Positions 1,283-29,900 of a stretch of DNA of 64,000 bases are shown here, in pieces (position 1 is the first letter of the stretch; each line of letters begins with the position of its first letter). The position numbers were made by a program, and so were the translations under genes. The stretch lies in assembly GCA_019828565.1 (NCBI GenBank), contig JAHDYR010000062.1:483666-547665 (forward strand). The letters are read 5' to 3'. The stretch is from Carpediemonas membranifera BICM (Eukaryota; Protista; Fornicata). The notes beneath the pieces were generated by a model. The model did not search any database. It was not told the DNA's origin and saw nothing but the letters and a program-made list of their open reading frames with translations.

Positions 1283-1434
1283 CATGCCGGCCTTCTTCTC
1301 AATCGCCACAAAGTTGGGCGCGTCATCCTTCGCCGTTGATAGAGAAGGGAAGGGTAGACCGCTGTCACCCTCGTCGGCACCGGCCAACAGAGCGAGCTGC
1401 CAGCGCGACCAGGCCGCCGGATTCATTTGCGGAG
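1283..1434. repeat. Partial 298-bp satellite unit, left flank of LINE A
   Basis: Identical to part of the unit in 19069-21445. Ends with ATTCATTTGCGGAG (1421-1434), the TSD of LINE A. Confidence 0.95.
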
Positions 1435-2688
1435 TCAGTTCACCAATGATTTCAGCAAAGTGGAAACACTTCGATCATGGATGGACAAGGACCAACAGGC
1501 CTGGCCTATATGGATAGGGCAGTGCCCCATGGAGCTCAGAAGGAGCGGCCTTGGCCTCCTGTCTGAACATTCAAGGGTTGCTATCAGGGCATACCGCTGG
1601 GCGCGAGTGGGAGCTCCACGCCCATACCAAGGAATCAAAGTGTCTTCATGGAACGTATGTTTACAAGGAAAAGGAAAACAACCGTCGAGGGCCAGTGCTA
1701 GCACCGGCGGCTACATGGTTTTGTCAAGACCACAAGGAAGGAAGGGCAGCACAAAAGGGAAACAGGGGCCGTCGATAGGGGCTAAAAGGAGACTACGAAC
1801 AAAGCAACAACAACTACACAGAAAGGCCCCGCTACTCAGAAAAGGGCGACGCATTTTTAGGACCGCGCCTTTTTGAAAGAATGGCCTATATAGTACGGAG
1901 CATGGACAATGGGAGAAACTGGAAGGCCTGGACGGAGACCTCACCCGGATATGTACATGTGGCCCGACTTTCGGACCCAAAAATTCCGACCCAGTTTATG
2001 GACTAGGAAAAGGGGAGAAATTTTGCACTCAACAATGCAGGTAGAAATACCGACAAGGATCAGGGATTCCACGCAGAAGCAGTGGGAGGACATCAGGGAA
2101 CTACTGGACAGCTTCCTCGCTGAAAGGAACGATTCAAGGACTCTACTTCTTCGTAGAACAGGCAAGTTTACAGGAAAGTCGCTCAATGCGAACTCCAAAG
2201 GACGCAAGGAAGTAATCATGAACGCCAGACGCATCCTCTTCGCAACCGGCGTCACTGACAACAAGGACATCATCCTCAGGAACCCATGCGGCATCCACGG
2301 CCTCCGCGACCTTTTCTACATGCTCACAGAGGCGCTCAACCCCAGAGACGAGGAAGCAAAGGACATGGCACAGGCACTGGAGCCCAAGACGCTGAAAGCG
2401 GGCTTCACTGGCATGGCAAGATGGCCATCTGAGAAGGACATCGAGACGGCGATCCTCAAGCCGAAGGAAGATGGGCCCATCGAATGGGATGTAGACAGGG
2501 ACAGCGTCAAGAAGGCCGAAGGGTCGTTCATACTGGTATCAGGGGCTCATGGAGACGAGGCCGTAGAAGGCGTGCCTTACGACAAGGTATGGGATCCGGC
2601 AAACCAAGGCCCGGTCACCAGAGTGGCCTACGAGCAAGAGGACGGCAAGTACAGGGTCATCCTAGAGCTAAGCGACACGTCAGCATGG

Positions 2689-2754
2689 TGTGCCCTTAAC
2701 CTGCGGAATTCGTAAAACAGTCTTTATCATATTTCTGGGCCCTAGCACGGCACA
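2689..2754 (+). repeat. Gypsy-1 5' LTR (66 bp)
   Basis: TG...CA ends with a 6-bp terminal inverted repeat; identical to 7543-7608. Confidence 0.95.
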
Positions 2755-2775
2755 GTATCGATATTGCCGATTCAA

Positions 2776-5700
2776 ATGAAGACTCTTACAATTGACACCC
2801 CGTTCGCCGTCGAGAGAGCACTCCAGGAGTACCTCTCGGCGATGCCCCACGAGAAGAATCCAATTTCGTTCTTTAGGGCATTGTCCCCCGAGACAACAGA
2901 AAAACTTCGCGCCCAGTGGCGCCCAACCACTCTTTTTGACACTTTCGAGGACCTACAACGAACCGTTCTGTCCGATTCCGATGCTCGCCGCGCGGCGAAC
3001 ACAAGCTCTGCCAGTACTGCGGCACGAGCCCGTACAACGAAGACCGACAACCTCACCGCCATCTGGGTAGAGGAGGTACAGAAGACCATAAGAAAAGCCA
3101 CGTTCGCCGCCTGTAGCGAGTGTGCAGCTAAGCACAAGGACCCCACCCTGACAGCAATGACCCGGGAGTGCCTTGAAGCTCAACATCCCCAGATACTGAC
3201 TGACTGCGGCAAGAAGGCCTGCGACTTCTTCACCCAGCTGACCGACGACCACGACATCGCAAACGTCGAGACAGTCGCACGGCCTGGCAACCTGACCGGC
3301 CCGGACGGCGAAGACGTCTCGGTGGCGTTCGTGTACATGCCCCCAGTGCCCGAGGAGACCAAGCCCGCCCCCTCCTCGGCGGCTTGGCCAGTCTTCGATG
3401 GCGGGGACGTCTACGCTTTCCTCGCCAAGGAGGCGACCTCCATCGCCCCCTACCTCGCATATACCCTCTTGACTAGTACGGACCCGGGCGCAAGAGCCAA
3501 GCTCCTCAAGGCAAAGCTCGACAACATCACGCTATACGGTCCGGAGCCCCGGCACCGAACGGCCGTCGAGAAGGCACGTAAGCTCATAAGCGCCCTCAAC
3601 CCAGACATCAAGGACGTCCCCACCATCTCCGCAAAACTGCTCGAGCGGATCATTCGGGACTTCGCCACTAGAGGTTTCTCCAAAGAAGCCGAGGATGTAT
3701 ACGAAGAAGAGATTGAGGACTACTCCGACAAGATCAGCGAACTTCTCGACAAACTACGCGACTTGGATGTTGATCACGACGAGAACATCATTATCCCATG
3801 GCGTGCCTTCAGACTCGCCAGCCCACAAGCCGACAACAACGAGCAGGCGTCGGGCACTTCAGGCAGGAAGCCGCTCGCTCGCAGGCTCGATGGTCGCGAT
3901 CCGTTCCAGCAGTTTAGGGACAAGACCAAGTTCCGCATGCCTCCTTCCCACACGAGATACTGCACACAGCATGGCTGGAACCCGCACCACGAGACGAAGG
4001 ACTGCAGGTTCCTCATCAGACGGGAGGCTTACAAGGCCCAAGAACGACAGCCACAGACCGAGAAGCGTCAGGAACGCAGACCCGAAGAGCGGCAAAAGCA
4101 GCCCGGCAACCGCGCACGCCCTGTGGCGCCCACCAGTCACCAACAGTCGGATCGCCGGGCCGGCCGCATGGACCTCCGCCCCTCGTCTACCCTGAAGAAC
4201 CCGCGCCGCGTCGATGAGGTGTTTGACGCGGATGAAGCGTCTCATTCGGAGTTGGAGAACGAAGTCTACGAGATCGAGGACATCATACTCGACAAGGACC
4301 CGGTGAAGGTCCCGGCTGTTATCAACGGCCAGCACATGAACGTCAAGTTCGACATCGGCGCTTGCACGTCGGTCATATCAGCCCCTGCCCTCGCAGCGAT
4401 CCCCGACGTGACCCTGATACCGACCTCAGTCGAACTTCTCGGCGCTGGGGACGATATCATCTCCACTGGCAAAGCCGCCAAGGTCTCGCTGACCCTCCCC
4501 AGTGTCGACGGAAAGACCGTGACCACCACTGCGTTGCTCATGGTCACGAAGGGCCAGAGGAAGAAGGTCCTCATTGGACGCGATTTGCTCCGCCGCCTCG
4601 GCTTCCTGCTGAACGACCGGCTACTAATACCGTCCGCTGACCCGATCGATGACGACGACGGCCTGGGACAGCACCCCTACCTCGACTCGACAACAGAAGA
4701 AGTCGACCCCGAGGAAGAGTGGCGCAAGGTTAAGCTGCCGACCGAAGAGAACCCGGAGCTGGCTGCCTGGCTGACCGACTTCCTTCGCGAGCGCAAGGCC
4801 GTGTTTGGCCCTCTACCTCCGGATGGCAGCAGGATGCCGCCACACGAGATCGTCGTCGATCCAAGCCGCCCTACACCCAGGGCCCGACCCAGGCCGTTGA
4901 AGGGTGATCCGGGAAACTCAGCCCTCGCGGAGATCGACAAGATGCTCAACCAGGGCGTGATCCGAGAGAGTCAAAGTCCGCACTCTAGCCCGCACGTCAT
5001 GGCAAAGAAGAAGAGCGGCGAAGACCGCTTCTGCATCGCTTACAACGTCTTGAACAACGCCACCATCGACGACCTGTACCCCACGCCGGACATCCGATCG
5101 TTTGTACACGAGGCGAGCGGATGCTCCGTGTTCGCGGCGCTCGACCTGCGCAGCGGATACTGGCAGCAGAACATGGCAACCGATAGCATCCCGCTCACCG
5201 CATTCACCGTCCCGGGCGGGCATTACGAGTTCTTACGTACACCATTCGGGCTGAAGAACGCCCCAGCAAAGTTCCAGCGAGCCATGGACGAGATGCTCGC
5301 TGGTATCGACGGTTCGAGAGCCTATATCGACGATATCTTTGCGTACGCCCGCTCCATTCAGGATTTCAAGTCGACCCTCACCCAGATCTTCGACCAGTTG
5401 GAAGCTTACGATATCAAACTCCGCGCCGACAAGTGTGCCATTGGCATGAAGGAGGTTGAAGTCTGTGGGTTTATAGTCAACGAGTCTGGCAGGTCGGTTT
5501 CCCCCTCACGTATCGCAGCCATCCAGGACCTCACACCCCCAACGACGACAACGGAGCTGCGCCGCACGCTAGGCAAGTTCAACTATCTGTCAAACTATAT
5601 CCCACACCTCGCCCACGCATCAGCCCCGCTCAACGCCCTCCTAAAGGGATCGCCGCAGAAGTCGGCCCCCCCTCGATTGGACTGCCACTGAGGACGAAGC

Positions 5701-7516
5701 ATTCGCCCGTATGAAGACCCTAGTAGCCGAGCACACCGCCCTCGCGCTCCCAGACCTGAGTGCAAAGTGGACTCTCGAGACCGACGCATCGTCGACCGCC
5801 ATCGGTGGTGTACTGTGGCAGGGCGAGGGTGACGAGAAGGTCCCACTCGCCTTCTACAGCAAGACCCTCGACGAGACCCAGCAACGGTGGTCCACGGTGG
5901 AACAGGAGCTTTTCGCCATTGTCTATTGTGTAACGCGACCAGAGTTTTCCCCCCTCTTCAAGCTGAAGCCGTTCGAGCTTCGCACGGACCATCGTAATCT
6001 GATATGGCTACTCAGGAAGACAGACGAGGACGGCACTAAGAAACTGACACGATGGCGACTCACCATGACAGAGTATCCGTATAACGTCACACACATAGCT
6101 GGAGCGCAGAACCTCGTAGCCGACGCACTGTCGCGGCCATCATCTCAGCGCAAGAACGAGGTGCGCTGCTCGATCGACCACGTCACCACGACGCGCCAAG
6201 AGCAGATCACCAGGGCGCACGCCGGTGCACAGGGCCACGTCGGCCCAGACCAGACCATCGCCAATCTGAAGCAGTCCGGTGTCACGTGGCCAGGCATGTC
6301 GGATGACGTCCGCGCGACCTTACGCCAGTGTCCAATCTGTCGCAAGACAAAGCCAGCCCGCAAGGAGCCGATCAAGTGGCACTCTACTCAGCGCATCCGC
6401 CCATTCGAGACGGTGCAGGTGGACACCATTGGCCCTTTGCCCGAGAGAGACGGTCTCAAGTACGTCATCACGGTGGTGGACGTGTTCTCGAAGTTCACCA
6501 TATTGAAGCCCACACGGTCAACGAGCGCAGCCGAGGCAGCAGCCGCATTGCTGGAGATCTGGGCGACTTTCGGCGTCCCGGCCGAGCTCCAGTCTGACCA
6601 AGGTACACAGTTCAGGAATGCCCTAGTCGAGGAGATGAACGAGCGACTGAGCCTCAAGCACCGGTTCAGTACGGCATATCATCCGGCCAGCAACGGCGTA
6701 GTCGAACGCCTGAATGGTACCGTCATGAGACGCTTAAGAGCGCTCCTGCTGGACGCCCGCGACGACAACTGGCCCGCATACCTGCCCATCGCCCAGCACG
6801 TTATCAACGCCACCCGCCACTCCACCACAGGCCTCAGCCCCTTCGAACTATTGTTCGGACGCAAGTCAACCATGCTGCGCGTCGCGCCCGACGCCCTGAC
6901 CAACGCAACCCAGATGCTCGAGCCGGGCTCAGTCGAAGCCGACGACATCGTCCGCTTCCAGGCCCACGTCACGTCGCTCCAACAACTTGCCGCGATCAAG
7001 GTCAAAGCCTACGAGGTAAACAAGGCTGCAGGCTCCTCGGACAGCACACGGGCCTGGGAGAACGAAACCTACGTCCTGCTGAGATACCCGGGCAAGCCGC
7101 CGACCAAGCTACTCCCGCCTCTGCGCGGACCGCTCCGCATGGAGGGGAAGGGCGATCACCCCAACACCTACAAGGTGATGGATCTCGTGTCGAAGTGCGT
7201 CGCCACAGTCCACGCAGACCGACTCGTCACATTCCACGCCGACGGCCTCACGGAGAAGGAGCTCGAGGAAATTGCCGCCTACGAGCAAGATGAACAACCC
7301 GTGGAGGCAGTCGTAGGCCACCGTAAGAAGAAGAACGGCTCTCTGGAGCTACTGATCCGTTGGGAAGGCCTCACCCCCGACGAGGACTCATACATCCCCT
7401 ATAATCGCTACTACGACCAGCTCGAGGCTATCGACAGTTATCTCGAGCTCAATCCTGGTCTCAAGCCGATGTTTGAGAGTGCTAAGAAGAAGTTCCGCAG
7501 GAGCGGTCGCCGTTAG
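2776..7516 (+). CDS. Gypsy-1 Gag-Pol polyprotein: CHHC knuckle, aspartic protease, RT, RNase H, integrase, chromodomain; one frameshift in a C7 run at ~5666-5672
   Basis: YCTQHGWNPHHETKDC; FDIGA; LDLRSGYWQ, PFGLKNAP, YIDD; ETDAS...EQELFAI...TDHRNL; HHCC; DTIGP, SDQG, NGVVE; C-terminal VEAVVGHR...LLIRWEG. Removing one C gives KSAPLDWTATEDEAFARMK. Confidence 0.95.
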
Positions 7517-7542
7517 TCATGCGACACGCATTGGGAGGGAAG

Positions 7543-7608
7543 TGTGCCCTTAACCTGCGGAATTCGTAAAACAGTCTTTATCATATTTCTGGGCCCTAGC
7601 ACGGCACA
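7543..7608 (+). repeat. Gypsy-1 3' LTR (66 bp)
   Basis: Identical to the 5' LTR; preceded by the PPT and followed by TSD ATGG. Confidence 0.95.
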
Positions 7609-9447
7609 ATGGTCCATCAGCCGCTTCATGGAGGAGGCTAGGGACATCCTCAGGCTTCAGGCACCGGAGGCCCCGGCCATATGGCAGGCAGCATGGAACA
7701 AGTCAGGGATCTACCTGAAGGGGCAGAACCAATATCCTGGGCGAAGGGGAGGAGACCCCCTTAGCAACGAGCCGCCGTTCCGGAAGGTGAGGCTGGAAGT
7801 GCTCAAGGCCACCTCGGTCCGCAGCAATAGGGACGAACATGCCGATCTGGACAGGTCGTCCGCTAGCACGGTCATCGACGGAGACGAGGAGCAACATGTC
7901 AAGGACAAGGAGGAACGACGCCAGCAGGCCACCATGCCCGGCAGAAGAAGCCTCGACGACAGCCTCCTGGAAGTGAACAAGGACATGGTCGGGGCCAACC
8001 AAGGCAAGATCGACCAGGACGAGGAGGTCGACTCAAACAAGGTCAGCAGCCAGCCGCCGAGGATGCCTAGAAAGGACAAGGAGAAACGACTGGTGATCGG
8101 AGCCATCGACTTCGAGTGCGCAGACCCTGGCGTCAAGAAGGCAGGGATCCCTGCCATCCCGGTTGAGGGCGGGATCGTACTCTTTGACCTCAGCACTGGG
8201 GACATTCTTGGACACGGGCATGGCCTGTATTACCAGGACATACCGGCAGCAAGCATGGACCAAGCGAGGTACACGGCATGGGCAGTGACGGGGCTGCCGC
8301 CGGCCACCTTCGTGGAGGTCGGGACGGGGCGGCCGCCGATCGAGTATGAGAAGCACATACATACTTTCAGGGACTGGGCCAACCGCCTGGCGGCTCAGCT
8401 GGCAAGGATCGAAAGGTCGGAGGGTTGGAAGATAATCATGTATGCAAAGGGGGATGGAAAGCTTCCTCCTCACGAACCCCACAAATGGACTGGAGCAAGG
8501 AACCAGGGAATTCTTCCAAGCTAGGCTGGTGGACGAGAAGAAGCTACCAGAGATCCTGGAGAACAACGGCAAGGAGGAGGCTGGCCAAAACCTCAGGGAC
8601 AACCTCGACAAGGCCAACTACCTGGAAGCAGTAACAACATGGTCAAATGGATGGCAGAACAGGAGCGAGCCCAAGGGAGTCTGTCCGTACCACAGACACA
8701 CCGCGGGTTGCTACCACTGTGGGTTGGCGGATACAGTAGTCTTCACAGCCAGGATCAGGGCCCTATGCAAGGAGAGGATGAGCACCCCAGACGTCTACCA
8801 CTACATGGGTAAGGCACTCGACAAGACCATGGAAGCAGTCGGGAAGGCGGAGCCGGGCATGGATATCATGGGAGGCCCGGAATTCGCGACAAGGAGGGAC
8901 ACCTTTGAGATCTTCGGCACGTACCCGATCGGGGACGCAAGGGACGTCAGCAGGGAAGTCGGCGACAGGATCCTCGTAGTCCCGGACAACGGACACCGCT
9001 TCGGCATCGGCTTCGGGTTCGGGGAGGTTCTGTTGGGCATGAAGGGCATCTTACTGGCCCCCCTCACAATCATGGACAACGAAGGTGTACTGGAGAGAAG
9101 CCCGCTATGGACCATCATGGAAGAGCCACGGCTAACCAGCTCCGCATGGTACGCGTCAGGAAGGGCCTAGGGGCAGCAAGGGAGGAGGACATCATAACCA
9201 TGGCCATGCTATACGAGTGGTGGCCCTCGAAGGAGGCTACGGCTCATCAAGGAGTCTGGGGCTGCGACAACCTAGCAGAGAGCCTCAGGGACTATGAGAA
9301 GGTCATAGTCAACGTCAAGGCCCCCAGGAACAGGGGTAGGATCACCCTAGGGGCGAGCTTCATCCCGAGAGACTGGGGCATGGTCAGGGTCAGCGAGGCT
9401 GGGACCATCCTAAGCCGCATGCGCAAGGAAGGGGCCAGACTAGTCTC

Positions 9448-9571
9448 TGTGGTTCGTTTGACGAACTATGTTTACAGGGGAGAAGACTCGACACAATGGT
9501 GTCGAGGAGAAACTCCTTGACTAACTAATATCATATATAAATCTGTGTAATCTTGGGTGAGACCCATGACA
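9448..9571 (-). repeat. Gypsy-2 3' LTR (124 bp)
   Basis: Identical to 15362-15485. Contains TATA-like TTTATATATG (minus strand) and the hairpin CTCGACAC/GTGTCGAG. Confidence 0.95.
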
Positions 9572-10228
9572 CTGCCCCTCCATGCCTCAATGAGGCATGA
9601 CCCCAGACAGCGTGAGCTTTGACGGCTGGCTACTGCCAGTGGGGGTGAATGTTGGCTCTTGGGGGCCGGTCCTGGTGGGTGCCAACCACCGATCGAGCCC
9701 CTTTTTTGCGACCTTGGCGGGGACACAACAAGAAGCACAACGACGTGCAAAATAGCACGGCTTACAATCGCGCGGTACCGCTGGGTTAGAAGGATCCTAC
9801 CATAGGGGTTCTGCCCCTCCTCGGCTTTTCCTCGCCGAAAATCGAAATGTGACGTACCTTAAAATGCTTGGGTGCAGGTTATGGCCATCCAAACACAACG
9901 ATGGTGAAACACCGCCCCTTTCCAACTGTTTGCGCCATTAATCAGGTTGGTGCTGAAAATGGCATTTTCAGGCCTCAACGAGGCCTCTACGGCGAGATAC
10001 GAGCCTTTTTCTTTGCAGCGTGAATTCACACCACGACTACGCTCAGATAGAGCTACTAAACGACTAAACAACATCAAGACAACAATAAAGAGATCATAAC
10101 TCCATGTTTGAGCGGCTTTCCATTCGGGATTGGGATGTTTCATTTTGCACCAATCTTGGTGCAAATGGTGACGGAACATTTGGGGGAATTGGCGCGGTTG
10201 CTGCAGCTAGTAGCTTCTGAGGAATCTG

Positions 10229-11257
10229 ATGATCCTCGAATGCTTTCTCTGCAGCGCCGTTGTGCAACATTGGGCTCCGACATCCAAAAATCTGCGATCG
10301 TCACGCGTAGCGCCGGGCAACAGGAGGCGCAAGAGGCTTGTGCGCCGTCCCGTGTGTCACTCCGAGCCCGCTTCGTCGGTAGACGAGACCTCGAACGATG
10401 ACAGCGAAGAAGACGAATCACCGACTTCTTCGGACGATGCCCCGGGGAATGACAGCTCCCCAACGCTGCCAGACGGCCAGCCCGAAGCCAACCAGCCTGC
10501 TGACGTGACTACTACGGTTCGCCAGCTCTCCCACGCCTCAGGAACGGACGTTTCGGACTTGAACCGGCTGGTCCATCGGCTGTTGGGCGAGCACGCCCAT
10601 TCGATTGCTCTAACACTCACTCCGCTTATGAATTCTCTCCGTGAACAGCGGTTCGAGCGTGAGTTCTCCCTCGAAGACGTCGAACGCCAACTTAAGGGTG
10701 TTTCTTGTGCGCGTCGCGTGTTGCTCGATCTTCAGGCCTTCATGAAACTTGCCCAGGCACTACCTGAACTGGACCTGCATCGCGCCGCCACTTGGCACCA
10801 TGAGATGGACGCTATCCGACGCAAGCTCCCTGGTAGGGGTGACAAGTCCCTCTGCCACCTCCTGGCCTTAGCCGTCTTCCCGGGAGTCTATGGTTTGCTT
10901 CAAGAGGCTTGCTACCGGTCCTCTGATATACCGGAGATGGAGAAGCGATTCCGCTTGGTCATGCGGGTATTCAAAGCCCATCCACAGTGGGTACCGGTAC
11001 TCATGACTACGGGCGACGGAGGGCTCCAGTTCACTGATGAGCTCCGTACTTATCGACTGGAACGAGTTGTTGGCAGTCGCAATGGCCCGGGTAGTCGACT
11101 CCTCACGTTGAAATGGGAAGACTACAGGTTTGTGACACGGTCGTACCCGACGCCGGAGTTGCTAGAATTGCCTGAAGTGGTTGCGCACCTTGCTCGTCAC
11201 GGGGTTGAACCGCGCAGTACTGGACCTGCCTTCGCTGGTCGGGGCCGCCGACTCTAA
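10229..11257 (+). CDS. Gypsy-2 antisense accessory ORF with C-terminal chromodomain-like segment; true start probably near 10135 via a frameshift
   Basis: 342-codon open frame with an acidic linker, helical core and YRLERVVGSR...LLTLKWEDY...SYPTPELL. Converges on the pol stop at 11301. Confidence 0.65.
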   Translation: MILECFLCSAVVQHWAPTSKNLRSSRVAPGNRRRKRLVRRPVCHSEPASSVDETSNDDSEEDESPTSSDDAPGNDSSPTLPDGQPEANQPADVTTTVRQLSHASGTDVSDLNRLVHRLLGEHAHSIALTLTPLMNSLREQRFEREFSLEDVERQLKGVSCARRVLLDLQAFMKLAQALPELDLHRAATWHHEMDAIRRKLPGRGDKSLCHLLALAVFPGVYGLLQEACYRSSDIPEMEKRFRLVMRVFKAHPQWVPVLMTTGDGGLQFTDELRTYRLERVVGSRNGPGSRLLTLKWEDYRFVTRSYPTPELLELPEVVAHLARHGVEPRSTGPAFAGRGRRL

Positions 11258-11300
11258 CAACTAATCAACAATAAATCAGGCGAGATGAGAATAGGAGGGT

Positions 11301-14300
11301 TTACAACCCTTCCGACTTGGCCTGAGCAGACGACAAGAAGTCATTCAGAGCAGCAGCGTCTCTAAGGGAGCGGTATGGCTCCCAGGTAGCCTCGGAGTCT
11401 TCAAATCCTTGCCAATGGACAAGGTACTCTCTCTTTGAGACCGAGCCCGAGCCACGCGACTTGGATATCCGGTCGATATACCACTCCTCCACGCCGGCGG
11501 CCGCCACCTGCTTGATCTGTTCCTCTGATAGGGTGCCGGGGACGAACTTTCTGACGCGAGACGCATCGACCCGGATGGGTTCCGCTCCGGGCTGACCTAA
11601 GTCTTTCACCATGTAGGCTACTACAACACCGCTCTGCTTGACAGACGACACTCGTCGCATAGGCCCTCTCCAGCCCGGGGAAAGCTTGTTTGGAGGGCGC
11701 GAGGGATATTTCACGAGCACAAACCGTGACAAGATCTCCGTGCGGGTGGTGGAGGCATTCGCCAACGCGTCTTCGCGCATGGCCAGGACACGTGCCTTGG
11801 CCAATTGTGTAGCGGCTTCGGCAGCGAGGAGATGCGACGTACGAGCTGCTGCCGTGCTGTTCTCGGTAACGTATAACTTCTCCGGCACCGCCATGTTGCT
11901 CCCGAACAGTATCTCGGCGGGGGAAAGGCGTGTTGGTTGTCTTGGCATGGAATTGACAATAAACTGCGCAACCGGTAAATGCTGACGCCAATTGCCGTTT
12001 CTGAGCTCAAACTTCCTTGCCTTGAGCACTCTCTCGACCATCTGGTTAGCTCTCTCAACCATTCCGTTGGACTGAGGGTGATGCGCGGTGGTAACGTGTG
12101 TCTCGAATCCCATGTCCTGTGCCAGCTTCTTCATGAGAGCATTATTGAACTCGGGACCTCCGTCAGACTGCAGCACTCGTGGGCAACCGTAACGCAGCAC
12201 CCATGTGTTGACGAAGGCATCCACGGCATCGCGTGCGGTGGTAGACTTGACGGGGGCTAGCTCCGTCCACCTGGAACACATGTCTATCATGACTTGGACG
12301 TATTTGTAGCCGTCACGCTCCGGGAGCGGACCTAGAGTATCGATTGCCACCCGCTGGAACGGTGCATCCACAGCCGTGTGTAGACCGTCTGTTTTTTTCA
12401 ACAGGCGGTCTCTCCAAGACCTGGCAGACAGGGCACTTGGCGACGTAGTCGTAAACGTCACGGCGAGTAACTGAGACACCGGCTTCCCGCAAACGTTCCA
12501 TGGTTAACCGTCCGGAGAGGTGGGCGTTACCGAACAGGTGGGCTTTGCTGATCTCATCAACTGACGCTAGCGAGAATACGCGCGACAGACCGTCGGCTCC
12601 CCCGTTGTCTAAAACCGGCCACGTGCTTCAATTCGAAATCTAGGTCTGCAATAGAATCGGCCCATCTACGCACCTTAGCGTTACTCGACCTATACATGTA
12701 CAAGAGGTTGCGATGGTCGGTGAGGAGCTCGAATCTCTCCCAGGACAAGAACTTCCTCCACTTCTGAAGGGCTGACACAATCGCAAAGGCTTCCTTCTCG
12801 CCGACACTCCATCTGGATTGGACGTCTGTGAAGGCTTTGGACATATAACACACGGGGCGACCCTCCTGCAGGAGGACAGCCCCGTACCCCACGTCGGATG
12901 CGTCAGTCATCACGACATGAGGTTTGGTCGCGTCGAACATCGCCAAAGAATCTGCCGAGCACAAGGCTTCTTTGATATCCGCTAGGGCAGCCTCTAGCTC
13001 TTTCTCTGGCACGGCCGTACGGTTAGTCGTTGCAGACACGAGTGGTTTGGCGCGGGTCGCGTAGTTCGGTACGAAGTCGCGGAAGTAGTTAAAGAATCCG
13101 ACTAGACCTTGCATCCCCTTGACTGTAGGCGACAGCTTCATGTCTTGGATATCGTTGACTCTCTCTGGTGAGATCCTGACTGACCCCTCGGAAATGATCC
13201 AGCCGAGGAACTCCACCTCGGCCCGACCGAACTGACACTTGTCCCTTCCGAGCTGGAGCTTGTACTCACGGGCGCGCTGGAGGACCTTCCTCAGGTTCTC
13301 GATGTATTCCTCAGGCGTGGCACCCATGACGATCACGTCGTCGATGTAAATGATGCAGGCGGTCCCAAGTAGCCCTCTGAACGCGTTTTCCATCGCTCTC
13401 TGAAAGAAAGCACCGGCATTGCGAAGCCCAAAGGGCATCCGTGTATATTGGAACTGGCCGAAGGTAGTCCTGAACGCGGTATACTTCCGGCAACGCTCAG
13501 TAAGGGCGATCTGGTGGTAGCCGGCAGACAGATCGAGCGTTGCGAACACTCGCTTACCCGAAAGTTGTGTGATAACTTCGTCAATTCGAGGGATGGGGTA
13601 ATCAAATGGCTCTGTCATGGTGTTGACTTCACGAAAGTCGACGACAAAGCGAGTCTTGCCACCCTTCTTGGGTACGATGATAGTTGGGCTGGAATAGGCC
13701 GATTGACACGCCTGTATATACCTCTTGGCCAGAAGGGTATCGATGTGTTCCTTGACAACCGGGACCTTTGGGGGCGGAACATAGTAGGGACGTACGTGGA
13801 CGACTCGATCGCCCTTGAGGCATAGGTCGTAGGGCTCGAGCTTGCTCGGTTCAGTACGGTCACGGAAGAGGTCTTCGTACTCCTTGAGCAGCTTGATCTG
13901 CTGGCTCGCGATACCATCGGGGAGGGTAAGAGCCTTAGCTTCAAACTTGCTCGGGACGGGAGGATCGTCAGTTGCTTCGCTCTCCGAGTTGCTAGGCTGG
14001 GCCATTGAGGGCAGCAGTCCGATCTCTACCATCTGGCTGTAACCAAAACTGACTTCGTACGCAGTTTTGAGAACGAAAGCGCGAATCTTCAGCTCGCAGC
14101 CACGTGGCGTGAAGGGAGATGGCCTCAACGTGATCTGCACCGATACGGCGCCTTCAGCTTCTCGTATTCCACCTGCCGTTTGGATGCGTACAGTATCGTG
14201 GTTGATCCTGGTAACGGCTGGCGAGGAGCACAGATCGGGAGATATCGTGGCACAGTCAGCACCAGAGTCTAGTAAGACCTTCACTTCGGCCTTCTCGATG

Positions 14301-15340
14301 ACTCCATTGACTACAGGCAACGACCCTCCACCTGACGCAGCGGAAAATAAACACTTCGCCCCGTTTACTGGGGACTTAAAACGGCAGAACTTCTCGAGGT
14401 GACCCTGCTTCTTGCAAACCGGGCATGTGGCACGATCCCGCGGGCACTTGAAGGATGGATGGCCCGTCTCGCCGCAGTTGTAGCACACCAGCTCGCGCTT
14501 GCCCTCTCCTCGTTGGTTCGGGGCTCTTGCGGCTGGCTTATCCTGATGATGAGGCTTGGCGATTGGCTTGGGGGCGGGATGGGTGGGTTCGTGGTGAAGA
14601 CCGCGATGGGGTTTGCCCGACTTAGCCTTGGTTGACGACTGCTTGTCGGTCATTCCGATGGAACGCAGCATGGCACGAGATTCCTCGATATCGCGAGCGA
14701 TATCAATCACCCGCGGCATAGCCTGTTCGAGGGAGAAGCCTTCGGTGAGATCCTTAACCTTGTACTGAACGCGCGAATTATCGGGTAGCTTAAAGCAACG
14801 CGCGTAGGTGTCGCAGAGGATCTCAGAGTCTACCCCGGGATCAACAAGGGAGAGGAGGGTTCTGAACCGTCGGTTCACTCGAACCACCTCCTGCGGAGTA
14901 AAGGACGAGATGGAGAGACGGAACAAGTCGAGACGGGCAGAAAAACGGGACGGTTGCAGTGCTCTACCGAGCCGCTTGAGGACGCGGTCGTCTTTAGCGA
15001 GACGCTTGGCCTTGCGCTTACGCTTGTGCGTCTTTCGGACAGCTGCGGTTAGGATGAGGGACTGCTGGAGGGGTTGCTCGTCGTCTTTAGGCGTTCCGGC
15101 TACTGGTGAACCTTCATCGTTCACGGGGACAGAGGCCTCAGCCGAGGGGATGGCTTCAGAGGCCTTGGCGAAGAGGTTAAAGCCGAGAGCGTCAGCGTAC
15201 CGTTGGACTTCGGTGTCAATCATGTCGGCAACGTCGGCATCACCGCCTTTGGCTCGGTACTCGGACAAATCCTCGGCGAATCGGACTAACGACTCAATGG
15301 TCGTCTTCTTTAGCATAGGCATATTGTTATAGAGCGTCAT
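11301..15340 (-). CDS. Gypsy-2 Gag-Pol: two CCHC knuckles, protease, RT, RNase H, integrase, chromodomain; frameshifts in homopolymers near 12613 and 12395
   Basis: CYNCGETGHPSFKC, CPVCKKQGHLEKFC; LDSGA; LDLSAGYHQ, MPFGL, YIDD; TDASD, TDHRNL; CPVCQ; IDTLGP, SDGG, NGMVE; WYIDRI...EYLVHWQGF...TWEP. Confidence 0.95.
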
Positions 15341-15361
15341 CAAAACGTGGAATACTAGTAT

Positions 15362-15485
15362 TGTGGTTCGTTTGACGAACTATGTTTACAGGGGAGAAGA
15401 CTCGACACAATGGTGTCGAGGAGAAACTCCTTGACTAACTAATATCATATATAAATCTGTGTAATCTTGGGTGAGACCCATGACA
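15362..15485 (-). repeat. Gypsy-2 5' LTR (124 bp)
   Basis: Identical to 9448-9571; the gag ATG follows 21 nt downstream. Confidence 0.95.
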
Positions 15486-16704
15486 TCTCGGCAGCTATCC
15501 CGGACGAGCCCAGAGCCAACACAGTCAATGTCCCAGGCATCACGTATGTCCCCACCATCGACGGAAAGTCCGAACAGCCATACCAAAGTAGGTTCTTCGA
15601 CAACGGCCTGGAGGAAAAGGCGAGGCGGATTAGCACCAGGATGGTGGGCAGGCACTTCGGCCAGGACGCGGATCAAGGACATCACGACCAGCATGGAGAC
15701 AGGGAAGAGGACAGAAGGGTAGGACACGGAGCCGGCGGTAGAGCTGGTGTCAGAGCTGACGACAGAACCGGCGACAGAGCTGGTAACATGAACAGGACCT
15801 CGGATCGTAACCACGGAGGAGACGACAGGGAGAGACAGGACAACACGGGAACGCAGATGAGAGGCTCGTTCAGCGGGAACACCTGGGCCGGTAGAGGCTC
15901 AGAGGGAGGCATGGACAACAGCAAGGATCACTCTTCCTCCACGACGCTCAAGCGCAAGGAGGGCAGCACGAGTAGGATCATGGACTCGGACAGCGGAAAG
16001 AGAAGCAGGTACGAAGAGGACACGGACTGGGAGTCTGGAAGCAGACAGGCAACCGGCATGGACTCGGAGAAGCTGCGGCTCCGAAAGCAGTTGGCAGAGG
16101 CGCAACAAGAGATCTCAGCGCTCAAGGCTGCCCGACTCATGCAAGAGCAAGGCCACGGAAGGTTGGTGCTCTCCGGCGTCGCGACTAAGCCCAGCAAGGA
16201 GAAGCCCACGATCCCCCGGCACAAGCACAAGAAGGCTAAGAAGGCCAAGCAGATCTCACCCATGGACCTGATGACCCAGTTCATCATGGTAATGCAGAGT
16301 CTACAAGGACAGCAAGCGAGTCAGGCCGAGGACAGCTGCAGCGGCAGTGGGGAGTCCACGGAGGAGGAGTAAGGACATGGTAAAGCAGTATTCTTTCAAG
16401 GAACAAGCAACATTTTCTTTATAATTCACAAGCCCTGGCTCCCACCCAGGGCCCGGCATTAGCTGAAATGCACTGCCGGTAGGCTGTAGCGGCAGCCAAA
16501 GGGGGGGTCACGTCATATCGTCCCCCTCCTAAGTACCCTGCCCGAAGAATGGAAGGTCACCAGGAGGTAACAAGGTTGGCCTGACAAGGGTCACCGAGAC
16601 CGGCATCTAGGCCCCTTGTTAGGACAAGGATAGCAGGAGAGGAGCGGGAAGCTGGGGCTCCCAAATTCTGGGAATTCGCAGGATAAGGAACCAGGACAAA
16701 GGCA

Positions 16705-18150
16705 ATGGTAACCTACAAGATACTTAGTCTGAACACAGAGGGACACATAGGAAGAGGAAAGGACTTCACGGCGTCTATGGCAACGGCGATTCAGCTAAGG
16801 TTGAAGGACATAGAGGCAGTACTCATACAAGAGACATGGAGAACGGCGAATACGAGGGTTCATTGCTTCATGGACCTTGACTACGCACTAGCAGGGAGGG
16901 AGACGGAAGAGGACCTGGTCTTAGCCAACGAAAAACGAAAGGCGGATGTCAAAAGTCAGCACCGCATCAACCGACAACTAGGCATAGCAGGCAATGACGA
17001 ACCTGCGCCAAGATGGAAGGGAACAAGGGAAGGCATCGGCACGATAGTGAGCCCACACGCAACTGCAAAGTGGGACATCGGCATAACGGACAGCCTATCG
17101 GGAAGAGTGCAAGCCAGCATAATGAGAACCGGCAGGGACATACTAGTCATCAACGTGTATGGCCCTCCATCCGGCCACAGCAAGCAGGAGAAGGATGGAT
17201 TCAGGGACACTATACAGAAGATCATGGACATGAAAGGGAGCATGGAGGCCATAATTATGGGAGACTGGAACATCGACCCAGGCCAGATGGAAAGATCCAC
17301 CCGGTGGAAGGATATGATGGAGAAGCACAGGCTCAAAGCCATCATACCCAAGTCTGGGACGCTCACATCAGGAACATCAACCCCGGACTTTGCAGTGACA
17401 ACACCAGGAATCCAGGGGGCGGAGATTGAGGTGGTAGAGTCTCAGAAGGTCGGGGTATGGGGCTCAGCACACAATGGAATCACACTAGCATGGAAGGAAC
17501 AACGGTACTATGGCAGAAGTGAGCGAGACGTGGCTCTGGCCATACCCGAGGTGCACACCTGGCCCATGAAAAAGAAGGAGGGGCCAGTCACAGTCTCAAA
17601 GCTGAACAGGATCAAGAGCTCGGACCAATGGGAAGAGACTATAAGAGCATGCATGGGCGACCCAGTGAACAACAGGGGAGCAAAGGCAAGGGACAAAGTG
17701 TTCGGGAACGGAGTGTGGAGCGAACTCCAGCGAACCCCATGGACAGAAATAGGCAACAGGACCAGGAAGGAAAGGATGAAAGAGGAGCTGGAGAAATACT
17801 GGGGAGAGCGCAGGGCCAAATGGATGGCCGACCTCAGCAGAAGTGCAAAAGGGGGGTATAGGGCCTCAAGGGCCTCAGTGGAAGCTGCCATCAGAAGGTG
17901 GTGGTGTGATAACCAATACAAGGGAATGCCGGAGAGCCTCCTCAAGGACGGAGTGATAACCACGGACAAGGCGGCCATCAGCGAGATCCTCTTGCAACAG
18001 TATGCTAGAGTCAGCAGAGGCAGGGAACCCACCTGGAAGACATGGAGGGGCAGGGACGGAAATGAGTTCAAGGAAAGCGAGGTCAAAGCCGCAATCACGG
18101 CAGGACTACGGGAACTGGCAAAGGTTTACAACAGCTTCAAGGTGGAATAG
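16705..18150 (+). pseudogene. LINE A ORF2: APE endonuclease intact, RT removed by an internal deletion after 18097
   Basis: LSLNTEG, LIQET, INVYGP, IMGDWN, TPDFA, SAHNGI. Near-identical to LINE C up to VKAAI (18097), then jumps to a terminus resembling the end of LINE B ORF2. Confidence 0.88.
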
Positions 18151-19068
18151 AAGCATGTCATGAATCCCTGACTCCAGGACCGGGAAGGGATGGACAAGGA
18201 ATCAGCCATGGACCACCCTCGCTGGGTGCTAAGCTCCTGGGATCAGTGAGGAAAGGCCCCACGTATCCCGGTAGCCAGGAACCAAAAGCAAGGGAAGGAA
18301 CGACTGCAAGGAAAGAACAGGAAGGACAGACCAGAAATAAGAAAGAAAGGACATGCGACAAGGACAGAGCAAGGATAAGGTCAAGGAAATCCATATTCAT
18401 ATGGTTGCACCACTCGTTGGGACCCCAAGGAAACTGCAGGGACTGGCCACGGGGGTCGGAGGGGCACAGGTGCCCCTGCCGCCCTTGTTAACGACATGGG
18501 AAACCAAGGACATGTAGTGCAAGCGAAATGTTGTAAGGGGTAACAGGACAACCAGGCCTAGTGCCTGGGGGTACACCACCCATGCCCTGACCCACGCCAC
18601 CTAACCGGGGTAGACAGCATGGACTTAGTCACTTTCCCCGCCTTCGGGTAGGCTTCTTAACAGAGTCGAGGGGGCATGGAATTGGGGAACCGGACAGACG
18701 AGAGGGTGCCGTGGCTGAACGGCTCTACAAGGACTGCAGGGAAGCAAGGAGTGTCATAGTCAAGGTTCTGCAGGACGATCCTGCCTGTCAACGCCCCGAG
18801 GACAGACCCCCAGGCTCCCCGGATAGTTGCCGGACCTTCAGGGAGACAGGAAAGCATATTTGCACGGAGATGGCCGCAGGGCTTCTGGGGCGATTGGAAT
18901 CGGCTTTCCGCGGAGACAGTAGCACCGAAAGCCCAAGGCAAACGCTGCTGACCAGTTTGCCACGGGAAATAGGCAGTACCCCGGGGCACTCAGCTCCAAG
19001 ACAACGGGAAACAAGCTCAGTCCGGGGTCAGAATCCAAGCACCATAAATTTCTTTCTTTCTTTCTTTC

Positions 19069-21445
19069 ATTCATTTGCGGAGATCATCTCTCTGACACCC
19101 GACCAGCCTTCAGCCCAGGAGCTGACGCACGTTTATGGCTCCCTGCAATGCGCAAGTCAGAAGTGTTACCAGCAACATCACCTTATCCATCCAATATCAC
19201 ATTTATCTTAAACCAGCCAGGCCCCAAGCATGCCGGCCTTCTTCTCAATCGCCACAAAGTTGGGCGCGTCATCCTTCGCCGTTGATAGAGAAGGGAAGGG
19301 TAGACCGCTGTCACCCTCGTCGGCACCGGCCAACAGAGCGAGCTGCCAGCGCGACCAGGCCGCCGGATTCATTTGCGGAGATCATCTCTCTGACACCCGA
19401 CCAGCCTTCAGCCCAGGAGCTGACGCACGTTTATGGCTCCCTGCAATGCGCAAGTCAGAAGTGTTACCAGCAACATCACCTTATCCATCCAATATCACAT
19501 TTATCTTAAACCAGCCAGGCCCCAAGCATGCCGGCCTTCTTCTCAATCGCCACAAAGTTGGGCGCGTCATCCTTCGCCGTTGATAGAGAAGGGAAGGGTA
19601 GACCGCTGTCACCCTCGTCGGCACCGGCCAACAGAGCGAGCTGCCAGCGCGACCAGGCCGCCGGATTCATTTGCGGAGATCATCTCTCTGACACCCGACC
19701 AGCCTTCAGCCCAGGAGCTGACGCACGTTTATGGCTCCCTGCAATGCGCAAGTCAGAAGTGTTACCAGCAACATCACCTTATCCATCCAATATCACATTT
19801 ATCTTAAACCAGCCAGGCCCCAAGCATGCCGGCCTTCTTCTCAATCGCCACAAAGTTGGGCGCGTCATCCTTCGCCGTTGATAGAGAAGGGAAGGGTAGA
19901 CCGCTGTCACCCTCGTCGGCACCGGCCAACAGAGCGAGCTGCCAGCGCGACCAGGCCGCCGGATTCATTTGCGGAGATCATCTCTCTGACACCCGACCAG
20001 CCTTCAGCCCAGGAGCTGACGCACGTTTATGGCTCCCTGCAATGCGCAAGTCAGAAGTGTTACCAGCAACATCACCTTATCCATCCAATATCACATTTAT
20101 CTTAAACCAGCCAGGCCCCAAGCATGCCGGCCTTCTTCTCAATCGCCACAAAGTTGGGCGCGTCATCCTTCGCCGTTGATAGAGAAGGGAAGGGTAGACC
20201 GCTGTCACCCTCGTCGGCACCGGCCAACAGAGCGAGCTGCCAGCGCGACCAGGCCGCCGGATTCATTTGCGGAGATCATCTCTCTGACACCCGACCAGCC
20301 TTCAGCCCAGGAGCTGACGCACGTTTATGGCTCCCTGCAATGCGCAAGTCAGAAGTGTTACCAGCAACATCACCTTATCCATCCAATATCACATTTATCT
20401 TAAACCAGCCAGGCCCCAAGCATGCCGGCCTTCTTCTCAATCGCCACAAAGTTGGGCGCGTCATCCTTCGCCGTTGATAGAGAAGGGAAGGGTAGACCGC
20501 TGTCACCCTCGTCGGCACCGGCCAACAGAGCGAGCTGCCAGCGCGACCAGGCCGCCGGATTCATTTGCGGAGATCATCTCTCTGACACCCGACCAGCCTT
20601 CAGCCCAGGAGCTGACGCACGTTTATGGCTCCCTGCAATGCGCAAGTCAGAAGTGTTACCAGCAACATCACCTTATCCATCCAATATCACATTTATCTTA
20701 AACCAGCCAGGCCCCAAGCATGCCGGCCTTCTTCTCAATCGCCACAAAGTTGGGCGCGTCATCCTTCGCCGTTGATAGAGAAGGGAAGGGTAGACCGCTG
20801 TCACCCTCGTCGGCACCGGCCAACAGAGCGAGCTGCCAGCGCGACCAGGCCGCCGGATTCATTTGCGGAGATCATCTCTCTGACACCCGACCAGCCTTCA
20901 GCCCAGGAGCTGACGCACGTTTATGGCTCCCTGCAATGCGCAAGTCAGAAGTGTTACCAGCAACATCACCTTATCCATCCAATATCACATTTATCTTAAA
21001 CCAGCCAGGCCCCAAGCATGCCGGCCTTCTTCTCAATCGCCACAAAGTTGGGCGCGTCATCCTTCGCCGTTGATAGAGAAGGGAAGGGTAGACCGCTGTC
21101 ACCCTCGTCGGCACCGGCCAACAGAGCGAGCTGCCAGCGCGACCAGGCCGCCGGATTCATTTGCGGAGATCATCTCTCTGACACCCGACCAGCCTTCAGC
21201 CCAGGAGCTGACGCACGTTTATGGCTCCCTGCAATGCGCAAGTCAGAAGTGTTACCAGCAACATCACCTTATCCATCCAATATCACATTTATCTTAAACC
21301 AGCCAGGCCCCAAGCATGCCGGCCTTCTTCTCAATCGCCACAAAGTTGGGCGCGTCATCCTTCGCCGTTGATAGAGAAGGGAAGGGTAGACCGCTGTCAC
21401 CCTCGTCGGCACCGGCCAACAGAGCGAGCTGCCAGCGCGACCAGG
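19069..21445. repeat. Tandem array of about 8 identical 298-bp units
   Basis: Units start at 19069, 19367, 19665, 19963, 20261, 20559, 20857 and 21155. Each contains the last ~50 codons, stop and downstream sequence of Sin3 on the minus strand. The array runs directly into Sin3 coding sequence at 21446. Confidence 0.98.
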
Positions 21446-26924: not shown

Positions 26925-29900
26925 CTACTCTCCTTCCTTCTCCTCGTCTCTCTTCCTTCTCAGGTCAGACCTGAAGTTATCCATCTTGGCTGCTAGGGTG
27001 AAGCTGAGGGCTTCGTTGGTTGCCGAGAGTCGGGCCGCGCGGCTGAGTAAGTCCTCGTTCTCTTCGGTTAGAGACGAGCACTTCTCCGTTGTCTTCCTGA
27101 GGTCCTTCCGCATCTCGTCCAACGCAGCTTGGGCTGCTCTCCGGGCTTCCCGTTCTTCCTCCAGCTCCTGGCTTTTGGCCTTGAGCTCGTTGATGGTTCT
27201 GGCTGCAGCTTCTTCCAGCTGTTGTCTGACCTCTGCTTCTCGCCGAGCCATGGCTTGGTCCAGCAGGGCCGCTATGCCTCTGCCCAGGTCGGTGTCCTCC
27301 TGTCGTGCTCTTTTGGGCTGCAGGTCCTCTTGGTCCACCTGTCTGACCTGGCGGGTCTTGGCTGATGGGTTGGGGGTATGGGGGGGGCACAGCTCTTAGT
27401 TGGAGGGGGCCCGGGCTCTGTTCGCTCTGTCCTGCTACTTTGCGGTTGTTCAGTGACAATTTGCCCGCGTGGAGGGCCATATAGGCCCCCTATGCCGCCA
27501 TTCGGCAGGTAGACCTCCGTCCTCCTGTGGAGCATCTTGGCGAGTTCAGTAGCCCTTCGTCTCACCTTTGTTCGAAGCGCCTGCTTCCTCTCGGTCCTCA
27601 GTCTGTTCTTGGCGTTAGTGCTGGCGCCTTCCGGGAAAACACAGTTCAGCGTGTCCCATGGCTTCCCCCCTTTTGGGTGTTCCACGCCTGAGCCCGCCAG
27701 GGCGAGTTTGCCTATCCAGGAGGCGCTCCTCAAGGAGCCTACTCGCTTCTTCCCTCTTTCTGCTGGTTCGTCCGTGATACCCCAGTCCCGGGGGAGGAAC
27801 GAGGGGAGGAAGTTGATGGAGCCTGTCTCCGGGTCGACACACATGTTGGCCAGGAGTTCTCGGTCGTCGGCTGGGACCTCCGTGAAGTAGTTGAAGATCT
27901 TCTTCCTGGCTTCTCTGCCCATGTGGCCTCCAGCTATGTCGAATTTGTGGACGGGCATCAAAGACGCCGCTTGGGATAGGGTCATCGTTTTGGTGTCGCT
28001 GACGTCTAGAGTAAGCATCTTTTCCGCGTCTATTTCCGTGGGCTCCCCCCTCAGGTTCGCCCAAGGGAAACCGTCTTGGACAGCGCGGCTGCGCCCGTTC
28101 CACTCCGAGTGGATTTCCAGGAGGATAGGTCGCGCTGGTTCGCCTACTCTCGCGAGCGATTCTGGGTTTCCGATGATCACGGCTGTTCCTTCCAGGGCTC
28201 TGGTGATACCCTTTCCGGAGCTGAAATCGTTTTCCTCCCAGTTTGTCATGATAATCTGGTCCCGTTTGGGGTTCTTGGTGCCAAAGAGGTTGACTTGTTG
28301 GGACAATGGGGTTAGGCGACCGGCCGCCACGGTGCCGAGGCCGTGTCTGGCGTTGACTTTGGTCGCCAGGTCCTTGTATTGATCATGGTACGGCGACTCC
28401 CTGCCCATGAGCATGCTTCCTAGGGCTGTGAGGTGGGCTTCTACCTGCCCCCAGTCCCAGCCTGGGTTGTCTCTCATCCAGAACGCTGTTGCTAGTCTGG
28501 CGTAGAATATGGAGACATCTGCTAGGGCGCAGTGGCAGTGGTGGGGTGCGTACTTGTGATAGGGGCACACCACTTTTGCCTCCGGGCGCTGTTGGTACCT
28601 TCTGGTCCAGGTCCGGCCCAGTTCGGACTGGGGTCGGGAGGGGAGGCCGGTGAGGCTCTTCTCCCCACTATTGGGGGTAGAACCAGGTCAGCGTGTCGAG
28701 GATGTTGGGGAAGATCGTGTTGAGGTCAGTTTCATCCATGAGGCGTAAGCTTAGCCAGGTGCGGAGGTTCCCGTCTGGAACGAACTTCTCACTGGTCAAG
28801 ATGCTTCTCTCAGCCTCGACTCCCTTAGCCACGATGTGGACGTGGGTCTTCTGTGGCCCCGAGTCGTCTTCCAGTCTCTTCAGCTCTGTTGCCATCTCGG
28901 TGCACCATCGCTTGGCGTGGGGGAAGTCTGCTTCGTATCCCTTGGGGGCTTTGCCCGTGGTGACGTCGACAAACGTAGCTGGTGGGCAGCCATGGATGTA
29001 GTGCGTGGCCCACAGACATTGGTCCAGAGCATCCACTGTGATGTCCTCCCCAAGCATCCCGTGCATGTAGTAGAGGATTTGCTCGTTAGCTGGGTCGAAA
29101 ATCAGTGCCGCCCCTTCGCAAATGATGGCCTCGTCTCCTTGGTTGGATCTGGCTCTTCCTTCCTCAAAGTCCACCATAGCGATCAACTGCCTGGTGGTGT
29201 TGGCTCGTTGGGTGATATTGGAACGAGGCGGGCTAGCTCCCATGCTGGGCCCGCATGTGCCCTTGTTTGGCGTGGTAGGTGTGTCATCAGGGCCGGAAGT
29301 CCTGCTGCCGCTCGGGCCCAGGGGGGTTTCTTCTTCGTTAGTACCCAGGGCTCCATGAGATGCCCCGTCCCGTACGGGCTCTACAACTTGGGTCTGCCCC
29401 GTTGTGAGCCAGTAGTTAGTGATGTTGCGCGTCAGAAAGGAGGCAGACACCAGTTCGCGGGCAATCCTCGCGGGTGGGGGCCAGAGACGCCTGGTCTTAT
29501 CCCATGCCGACCAGAGTTCGGGGAAGCCGGGGACTGACCACCGTTGGATGAGGTCTCTGACCTCCTCCCTCAGGTCTGCCTCTGCTGCAGAAGGCTCTTC
29601 TTCCAGGGGTGGGGGTGGGAAGACTGGCCTCATCACACCCTCGGTTCTGCTGTAGATGAGGATCTCCTCGACGGGGCCCTGGGTCCAGATCTGGATGGGC
29701 GTGCCGTCTGGTCTGCGGAAACCTCCCTCCGGGGGGTGAGGGGCGTGGTAGCCTTGCCCTTTGGCTAGTTCCCGGCCTAGGTCGGCCCAGAGCTTCTTGT
29801 TTTCGCGTCCTAGTGAGGGGGAGCCCTCTGGCTGCAGCTCCCGCGGAGATGGCGTGTCCGGCGGCATGGAGGAGCCACATTGCAGCCTCCATCCCGTACT

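Follow-up and report, generated by a model that had tools for sequence, protein, structure and literature searches.

A Maelstrom-related exonuclease domain within the ORF1 of Carpediemonas LINEs

Is an exonuclease in the packaging protein of a retrotransposon an old and selected part of the element, or was it captured recently from the host? The question is raised by a stretch of 64,000 nucleotides from Carpediemonas membranifera BICM (contig JAHDYR010000062.1, positions 483,666 to 547,665; 'the window' below), where the first open reading frame (ORF1) of two families of long interspersed nuclear elements (LINEs), LINE A and LINE B, carries the residues of a DEDDh exonuclease. The ORF1 proteins known from LINEs act as RNA chaperones, and some of them include an esterase; Maelstrom (MAEL), the family to which the domain is related, is a host factor that silences transposons in the animal piRNA pathway. 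We consider it likely that the domain is a Maelstrom-type DEDDh exonuclease forming an old, vertically inherited module of LINE ORF1, under purifying selection on catalysis. It would be a built-in module of the ORF1 (about 1170 amino acids) of a Carpediemonas LINE lineage with an apurinic-type endonuclease (APE). It would have been present before this lineage split into its present subfamilies, would have been inherited vertically together with endonuclease and reverse transcriptase (RT), and would be kept by purifying selection on catalysis, beyond the fold alone.

The domain in the window and its copies

In LINE A, the domain lies on two overlapping open frames of the plus strand (7544-8524 and 8442-9170), and a codon check of the window found all the motif residues named in a preliminary description at the codons given there. 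It is made up as follows.

8085..8452, plus strand: first (N-terminal) half of the DEDDh domain of Maelstrom type in LINE A ORF1, with ExoI (Asp 8108-8110, Glu 8114-8116), the zinc-ligand Glu (8165-8167) and a conserved His (8219-8221); the last strand ends in YAKG; aligned to the Rhizamoeba Maelstrom protein
8453, plus strand: site of a 5-nt deletion and frame break within the domain; GTGGA in intact copies; private to the window copy among 30 compared
8454..8830, plus strand: C-terminal half of the domain, in the other frame, with the ExoII Glu (8457-8459) and an invariant Asp (8532-8534)
Cys 8682-8684, His 8691-8693 (together the ends of a Cys-Pro-Tyr-His block, 8682-8693) and Cys 8718-8720, plus strand: zinc ligands of the C-terminal half, in invariant columns
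His 8715-8717 and Asp 8730-8732, plus strand: ExoIII of the C-terminal half; the closing helix extends to about 8830 in the predicted model

The frame break had been attributed to a run of five Gs. Comparison with an intact copy indicates instead a deletion of 5 nt (GTGGA) after 8452, which removes Val-Glu from a motif that reads YAKGVEMESFLL when intact. A Pfam search of both ORF pieces around the domain matched nothing.

ORF1 of this copy is interrupted by two nested gypsy elements (see below). Each broken piece was searched on its own, and in place of any repaired, joined or consensus sequence the analysis relied on intact copies that occur naturally in the genome of C. membranifera, a free-living metamonad (24.2 Mb in 69 contigs, 57.1% GC; transposons are not described in the genome publication, PMC8516963). 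An uninterrupted natural copy (L031:2143-5658, on contig C27) confirmed both joins and reads through an ORF1 of 1167 amino acids, and on contig C4 there is another copy with this open frame, of 1172 codons. Intact natural A copies elsewhere in the genome have the 1167-residue ORF1 followed by an APE-RT frame. Searching the genome with the first half of the domain gave at least 150 matches, and a profile of six subfamilies gave at least 161. Within the A family, 30 copies are 99.0 to 100% identical over the 732-nt domain, 13 of them being identical to L031, as is, indels aside, the domain of the window copy. The LINE A copy in the window is young but dead: it bears the two gypsy insertions, the 5-nt deletion at 8453 and a 1-nt deletion at 9121. 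Only one public sequencing run contains the sequence; it is not recorded as RNA, has the look of DNA with a longest contig of 395 kb, and yielded seven short contigs.

The domain was found in the ORF1 of at least seven LINE subfamilies of the genome, with domain identities of 24 to 51%. Natural intact representatives of six subfamilies, 32 to 51% identical to A, make up alignment A1; the seventh and very diverged subfamily is J8273_6114, where domain and APE are found in one predicted protein. Wherever a locus is long enough to show it, a homologue of the A or B APE follows about 2.3 kb downstream, on the same strand, so that the domain always stands in a LINE context. These elements have the features of APE-type LINEs, with Pfam Exo_endo_phos and RVT_1 in ORF2 and, across 24 Mb, more than 160 dispersed matches to the domain. 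The whole genome gave no more than three RNase H matches, which, together with Pfam on ORF2, indicates LINEs without RNase H. Full LINEs with the domain (L054 and L055) are present in a second assembly, GCA_002919055.1. In L055, a 1250-residue ORF1 with the domain is followed by a 1177-residue APE-RT ORF2, and the nearest solved structure to the RT of the latter is human L1 ORF2p (E 1e-20). A chromodomain-like ORF is located downstream of this LINE.

A tblastn search of the window with the A pieces returned one diverged relative (29645-28493, minus strand, E 1e-18 and 3e-9), which is LINE B.

28517..29177, minus strand: homologous domain of LINE B ORF1, with DFE (29177-29160), ICEGAA, containing the zinc Glu (29123-29106), AKGVEAE (28832-28809), CPYH (28570-28553) and HCALAD (28537-28517)

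The LINE B copy in the window, too, has a break between 28668 and 28573; intact LINE B copies are L050:1880-4852 and L051. The preliminary description saw no obvious DNA similarity between A and B, and blastn (word 11) detected none. It also held that the flanking ORF1 regions are highly diverged; diverged they are, but they can still be aligned, at about 15 to 29% identity compared to about 34% in the domain. The A and B ORF1 proteins are alignable along much of their length, the domain being the best-kept part.

Relation to Maelstrom and conservation of the active site

A hidden Markov model built from A1 was run against 1.84 billion representative proteins and gave 17 matches: Carpediemonas sequences, four long proteins of GCA_002919055.1, one spurious mucin, and P0016, the 352-residue product of a Rhizamoeba saxonica transcript (E 2.7e-4). 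Pfam identifies P0016 as Maelstrom (PF13017, E 5.7e-19); among solved structures it is closest to the three of Maelstrom, and the zinc-ligand Glu known from Bombyx MAEL is aligned. When a profile of the LINE domains only (A3, 11 sequences) was compared with P0016 by hhalign, the match reached a probability of 98.4% (E 5.4e-15) and covered ExoI to ExoIII in 183 columns. Judged on these profiles, the match between the domain and Maelstrom is far beyond chance.

In an alignment of 12 sequences that are 23 to 51% identical to A (A2), four blocks proved to be common to the LINE domains and P0016: IDFE, P-x-E-G, AKG-x-x-ME and C-x-YH-x7-YHCALAD. Invariant columns number just 13, and all nine residues predicted to be catalytic (D22, E24, E140, H226, D231) or zinc ligands (E41, C215, H218, C227) are among them. 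D165 is invariant as well. The DEDDh set is found in full, with ExoI as D22-x-E24, ExoII as E140 (Glu for Asp) and ExoIII as H226-x4-D231, and the invariant residues also provide the Glu...Cys-x2-His-x8-Cys (ECHC) motif of a predicted structural zinc site. Its Cys-x2-His-x8-Cys spacing is that of Bombyx MAEL, where the ligands are C290, H293 and C302 (PMC4408791).

The alternative that survives best is that the module is catalytically silent, ORF1p coating the LINE RNA by its fold alone. LINE ORF1 proteins are in general RNA chaperones, the ExoII position of the domain is Glu in place of Asp, and the precedent is animal MAEL, a binder of single-stranded RNA that has no nuclease activity (PMC4408791). 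However, the DEDD residues that animal MAEL has lost are all invariant here in sequences that are 23 to 51% identical and whose synonymous divergence is saturated, and P0016, a Pfam-positive amoebozoan MAEL, likewise has Glu at ExoII. We therefore regard a silent module as quite unlikely. Since neither the acidic residues nor the ExoIII His vary across saturated divergence, we infer that catalysis is the selected trait.

The structure of the domain was predicted with AlphaFold on A1 (predicted local distance difference test, pLDDT, 71.8; predicted template modelling score 0.74). The top match of the model in a Foldseek search of the PDB was Drosophila MAEL (4ybg, E 1.3e-3), and the remaining list consisted almost wholly of DEDDh/DnaQ-like exonucleases or domains derived from them. 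A VIA-align search, carried out exhaustively on all 48,161 PDB representatives, gave 27 chains with Z of 8 or more, all of them again DnaQ-like exonucleases or derived domains. The predicted fold is that of an RNase H-like/DnaQ-like exonuclease. Scores were 11.0 for 3'hExo, 10.8 for ERI2, 10.4 for RNase T and 10.1 for Pol III epsilon; the MAEL structures (5af0, 4ybg, 9nhc) scored 10.1 to 10.6 with the longest alignments (188 to 195 residues), and the arenavirus nucleoproteins (NP) scored 8.3 (Lassa) and 7.9 (lymphocytic choriomeningitis virus, LCMV).

Several observations weigh against an active exonuclease of Maelstrom type. The acid at ExoII is Glu, not Asp, in the LINE domains as in P0016. 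When the 12 aligned domains, the window pieces and intact ORF1 were searched against Pfam, no LINE sequence matched PF13017, even at E 10, and profiles A1 and A2 found nothing significant among PDB sequences, A2 giving weak ExoI alignments to ERI2 and CRN-4. Confidence in the model is medium (pLDDT 71.8) and drops to low at the zinc loop. Lastly, the link to Maelstrom, as read from the profiles, is a transitive one, passing through one protist protein plus the fold. As the LINE domains are below the reach of Pfam and have no PDB sequence match, membership rests on the profile-profile link, the fold and the motifs. A word-index protein search returned only Carpediemonas fragments and, with P0016 as query, only P0016 itself.

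One may then ask whether the domain is a generic DEDDh exonuclease, similar to ERI-1 or RNase T, that lies outside the Maelstrom family and gained its zinc site by convergence. The tie in Z-score between 3'hExo, RNase T, ERI2 and MAEL (10 to 11) would fit this, as would the failure of the Pfam Maelstrom model to find the LINE domains and the nature of the weak A2 matches (ERI2 and CRN-4). Yet the hhalign match at 98.4% to a PF13017 protein spans the whole domain, including AKGxxME and C-x-YH-x7-YHCALAD, the Cys-x2-His-x8-Cys spacing is that of MAEL (Bombyx C290, H293, C302; PMC4408791), and the longest structural alignments are with MAEL structures. A generic exonuclease is thus very unlikely in our view. 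We conclude that the LINE domain is a very diverged relative of Maelstrom which, lying below the Pfam gathering threshold, is not a member recognised by Pfam.

Descent, selection and possible roles

The history of the domain was compared with that of the endonuclease encoded downstream. Maximum-likelihood trees of domain and APE both contain an A-like clade (support 99/99 and 92/97) and a B clade, and both place two GCA_002919055.1 elements outside these clades, on long branches that are weakly placed. That the two trees share their major clades fits a single old acquisition followed by vertical descent. No cellular Maelstrom gene was detected, the C. membranifera genome having no PF13017 match, and no near-identical cellular gene was found among the 1.84 billion representative proteins. 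Transposable element proteins are under-represented in protein databases, so that sampling may explain why the domain seems confined to Carpediemonas.

Substitutions between subfamilies were counted by the Nei-Gojobori method. The synonymous rate (dS) ranged from 1.0 to saturated, and the non-synonymous rate (dN) of the domain, 0.40 to 0.82, was always lower than that of the flanks. The dN/dS ratios are rough because dS is saturated; the least saturated pairs gave about 0.39 (A versus s2) and about 0.23 (B versus s6). Among the 30 young A copies, codon differences from L031 were 15 synonymous to 3 non-synonymous, these events not being independent.

Recent and independent capture of a host exonuclease by LINE A and by LINE B has a parallel in the DEDDy ORF3 acquired at least twice by long terminal repeat (LTR) elements of bdelloids (PMC5408684), but it is already largely refuted here, and hardly credible, given that the genome has no PF13017 match, that a LINE endonuclease lies downstream of all matches examined, that domain and APE trees are congruent, that the A and B ORF1 proteins are alignable outside the domain as well, and that a second genome has LINEs of this architecture. 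The view of the preliminary description, that the domain is an ancestral and selected part of the element rather than a recent capture, is supported by the spread over subfamilies, the congruent trees, the substitution pattern and the lack of a detected cellular source.

What would such an old, selected exonuclease do for a LINE? By analogy with Entamoeba MAEL and arenavirus NP, the domain may be active as an Mg/Mn-dependent exoribonuclease, and it would presumably work within the LINE ribonucleoprotein. The exonuclease of the arenavirus nucleoprotein is known to hide viral RNA from innate sensing. Both motif sets are present in Entamoeba EHI_192630, a protist MAEL that is an Mg/Mn-dependent exoribonuclease, and in Lassa NP, an active exoribonuclease; animal MAEL, having lost the DEDD residues, binds RNA only (PMC4408791; PMC2628886).

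Three candidate roles were ranked. Placed first, although tentatively, is the removal of double-stranded RNA or small-RNA triggers of Argonaute silencing, by analogy with arenavirus NP and ERI-1. Two genes with a Piwi (Argonaute) domain exist in the genome (C7:87108-88037 and C65:23790-24737). There is no match to Pfam Ribonuclease_3 (Dicer type) anywhere in the genome, which counts against this role and weakens it; Dicer may be absent from C. membranifera or very diverged. It is also conceivable, but rather doubtful, that the exonuclease serves in trimming LINE RNA at its 3' end, or in removing the template RNA in target-primed reverse transcription, the element having no RNase H. RNA binding only is an unlikely third candidate. 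A more far-reaching idea, which we regard as speculative and poorly probable, is that the LINE exonuclease is a counter-defence that destroys small-RNA or double-stranded RNA triggers of host silencing, and that it shares its gene pool with the cellular Maelstrom of protists and animals, and perhaps with arenavirus NP, one side of the conflict between transposon and host having taken the module from the other.

An old and selected exonuclease in the packaging protein of a transposon raises the questions of how an RNA exonuclease is used in retrotransposition and where Maelstrom came from. C. membranifera can be cultured, and its LINE families are young, with many copies 100% identical and some with an intact ORF1; activity and mobility assays look feasible.

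The rest of the LINE A copy, and comparison with known systems

The open frame found from 7544 on has its start within the 3' LTR of a nested gypsy, and ORF1 proper consists of 1909-2688 and, in the same frame, 7613 onward. DNA similarity of the window LINE to L031 extends from 1432 to 19060, with the following parts.

1909..2688, plus strand: LINE A ORF1, first piece, from the start codon to the insertion point of gypsy-1; its frame joins 7613 exactly, as in L031:2143-5658
2689..7608, plus strand: nested gypsy/chromovirus (gypsy-1; gag-pol-chromodomain), foreign to the LINE; 66-bp LTRs (2689-2754, 7543-7608) with TG..CA ends
7613..9447, plus strand: LINE A ORF1, second piece, with the exonuclease domain, a disordered linker before it and a further region behind it
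9448..15485, minus strand: second nested gypsy, foreign to the LINE; 124-bp LTRs; target duplication TCTC (9444-9447, 15486-15489)
15490..16372, plus strand: LINE A ORF1, third piece, the low-complexity, coiled-coil C-terminus, to the stop codon
16705..18150, plus strand: APE part of LINE A ORF2, by Pfam

The target duplication of gypsy-1 is the 4-bp ATGG found at 2685-2688 and 7609-7612. The 66-bp LTRs of this element are unusually short, its insertion is frame-neutral in LINE A ORF1, and its gag-pol ORF begins 10 nt past the 5' LTR. The second gypsy has an extra plus-strand ORF of 342 amino acids (10229-11257) between the integrase and the 3' LTR.

Compared base by base with intact L031, the second piece of ORF1 has four indels: +1 at 7720, -1 at 7756, -5 at 8453 and -1 at 9121. 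The first two compensate each other, leaving 12 linker codons recoded relative to L031. Ten further copies retrieved with the first-half query are 100% identical from residue 36 on, the recoded patch included; as they share this patch, two young A sublineages seem to differ by a tolerated, compensated frameshift. The spacing between APE and RT is 342 nt in the window copy (17753-18094) and 15 nt in L031 (7041-7055), which leads us to read L031 as a copy with ORF1 intact and ORF2 deleted.

Units of a 298-bp satellite flank LINE A on both sides (1279-1434 and 19069-21454), with an eight-unit array after 19060, which suggests that LINE A inserted into this satellite, or targets it. A second, inverted LINE A copy (35085-37697, minus strand) is 99.6% identical from exactly 15486 onward; it begins in the middle of ORF1, about 36 nt from another satellite unit.

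The exonuclease is the only recognisable module of ORF1, a Pfam search giving no RRM, zinc knuckle or esterase. For the N-terminal 425 residues, the model was folded only at about 46-290 (pLDDT 59.7). This N-terminal domain (L031:2158-3432, residues 46-290) is conserved among A-like subfamilies and has, in a medium-confidence model, a helical part and a small beta part; no PDB structure matches it, whether arenavirus NP or another, the best scores being E 1.3 with Foldseek and Z 4.9 with VIA-align. A nairovirus OTU protease, suggested by weak Foldseek rows (E 1.3 to 5), was rejected because no Cys or His is conserved in the corresponding alignment (A4). The C-terminus of ORF1 is of low complexity with coiled-coil-like matches, and an ESM Atlas feature search with the N- and C-terminal parts gave no usable match.

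How does the domain compare with known systems? It shares with protist MAEL (Entamoeba histolytica EHI_192630 and P0016) the DnaQ-like fold, the full DEDDh set, the ECHC site with its Cys-x2-His-x8-Cys spacing, and the AKGxxME and YHCALAD blocks; those, however, are stand-alone cellular proteins of about 350 residues, whereas the LINE domain is buried in an ORF1 of about 1170 and falls below the Pfam threshold. Animal Maelstrom (4ybg, 5af0, 9nhc) provides the best Foldseek match and the longest structural alignments and has the ECHC zinc site, but it lacks the DEDD residues, has an HMG box and acts for the host in the silencing of transposons, whereas in the transposon-owned domain the catalytic set is complete. 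Arenavirus NP (Lassa, LCMV) likewise combines DEDDh residues with a Glu/Cys/His/Cys zinc site, within the RNA-packaging protein of an RNA-templated replicon (PMC4408791); its structural match is lower than that of MAEL, and the N-terminal part of ORF1 has no similarity to the NP N-domain. The exonuclease of LINE ORF1, Maelstrom and arenavirus NP is of one rare, zinc-bearing type.

Known LINE ORF1 proteins (RRM/CCHC, the coiled-coil-RRM-CTD of L1, esterase/PHD) resemble this one in lying upstream of an APE-RT ORF2 and in the coiled-coil-like C-terminus seen here, but differ in that the exonuclease is here the sole recognisable module. Full-text searches of the literature brought up no LINE ORF1 described as having a MAEL-type or DEDDh exonuclease, or a complete 3'-5' exonuclease active site. 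The nearest precedent is ORF3 of the bdelloid Juno/Vesta LTR and Athena elements, also an accessory 3'-5' exonuclease of the DnaQ superfamily and likewise with a DEED variant, whose authors stated that DEDDy exonucleases had not previously been reported in retrotransposons (PMC5408684). That exonuclease is of DEDDy type (RNase D-like) and is encoded by a separate ORF of rotifer LTR and Penelope-like elements, whereas the Carpediemonas domain is of DEDDh/MAEL type and stands within the ORF1 of a LINE.

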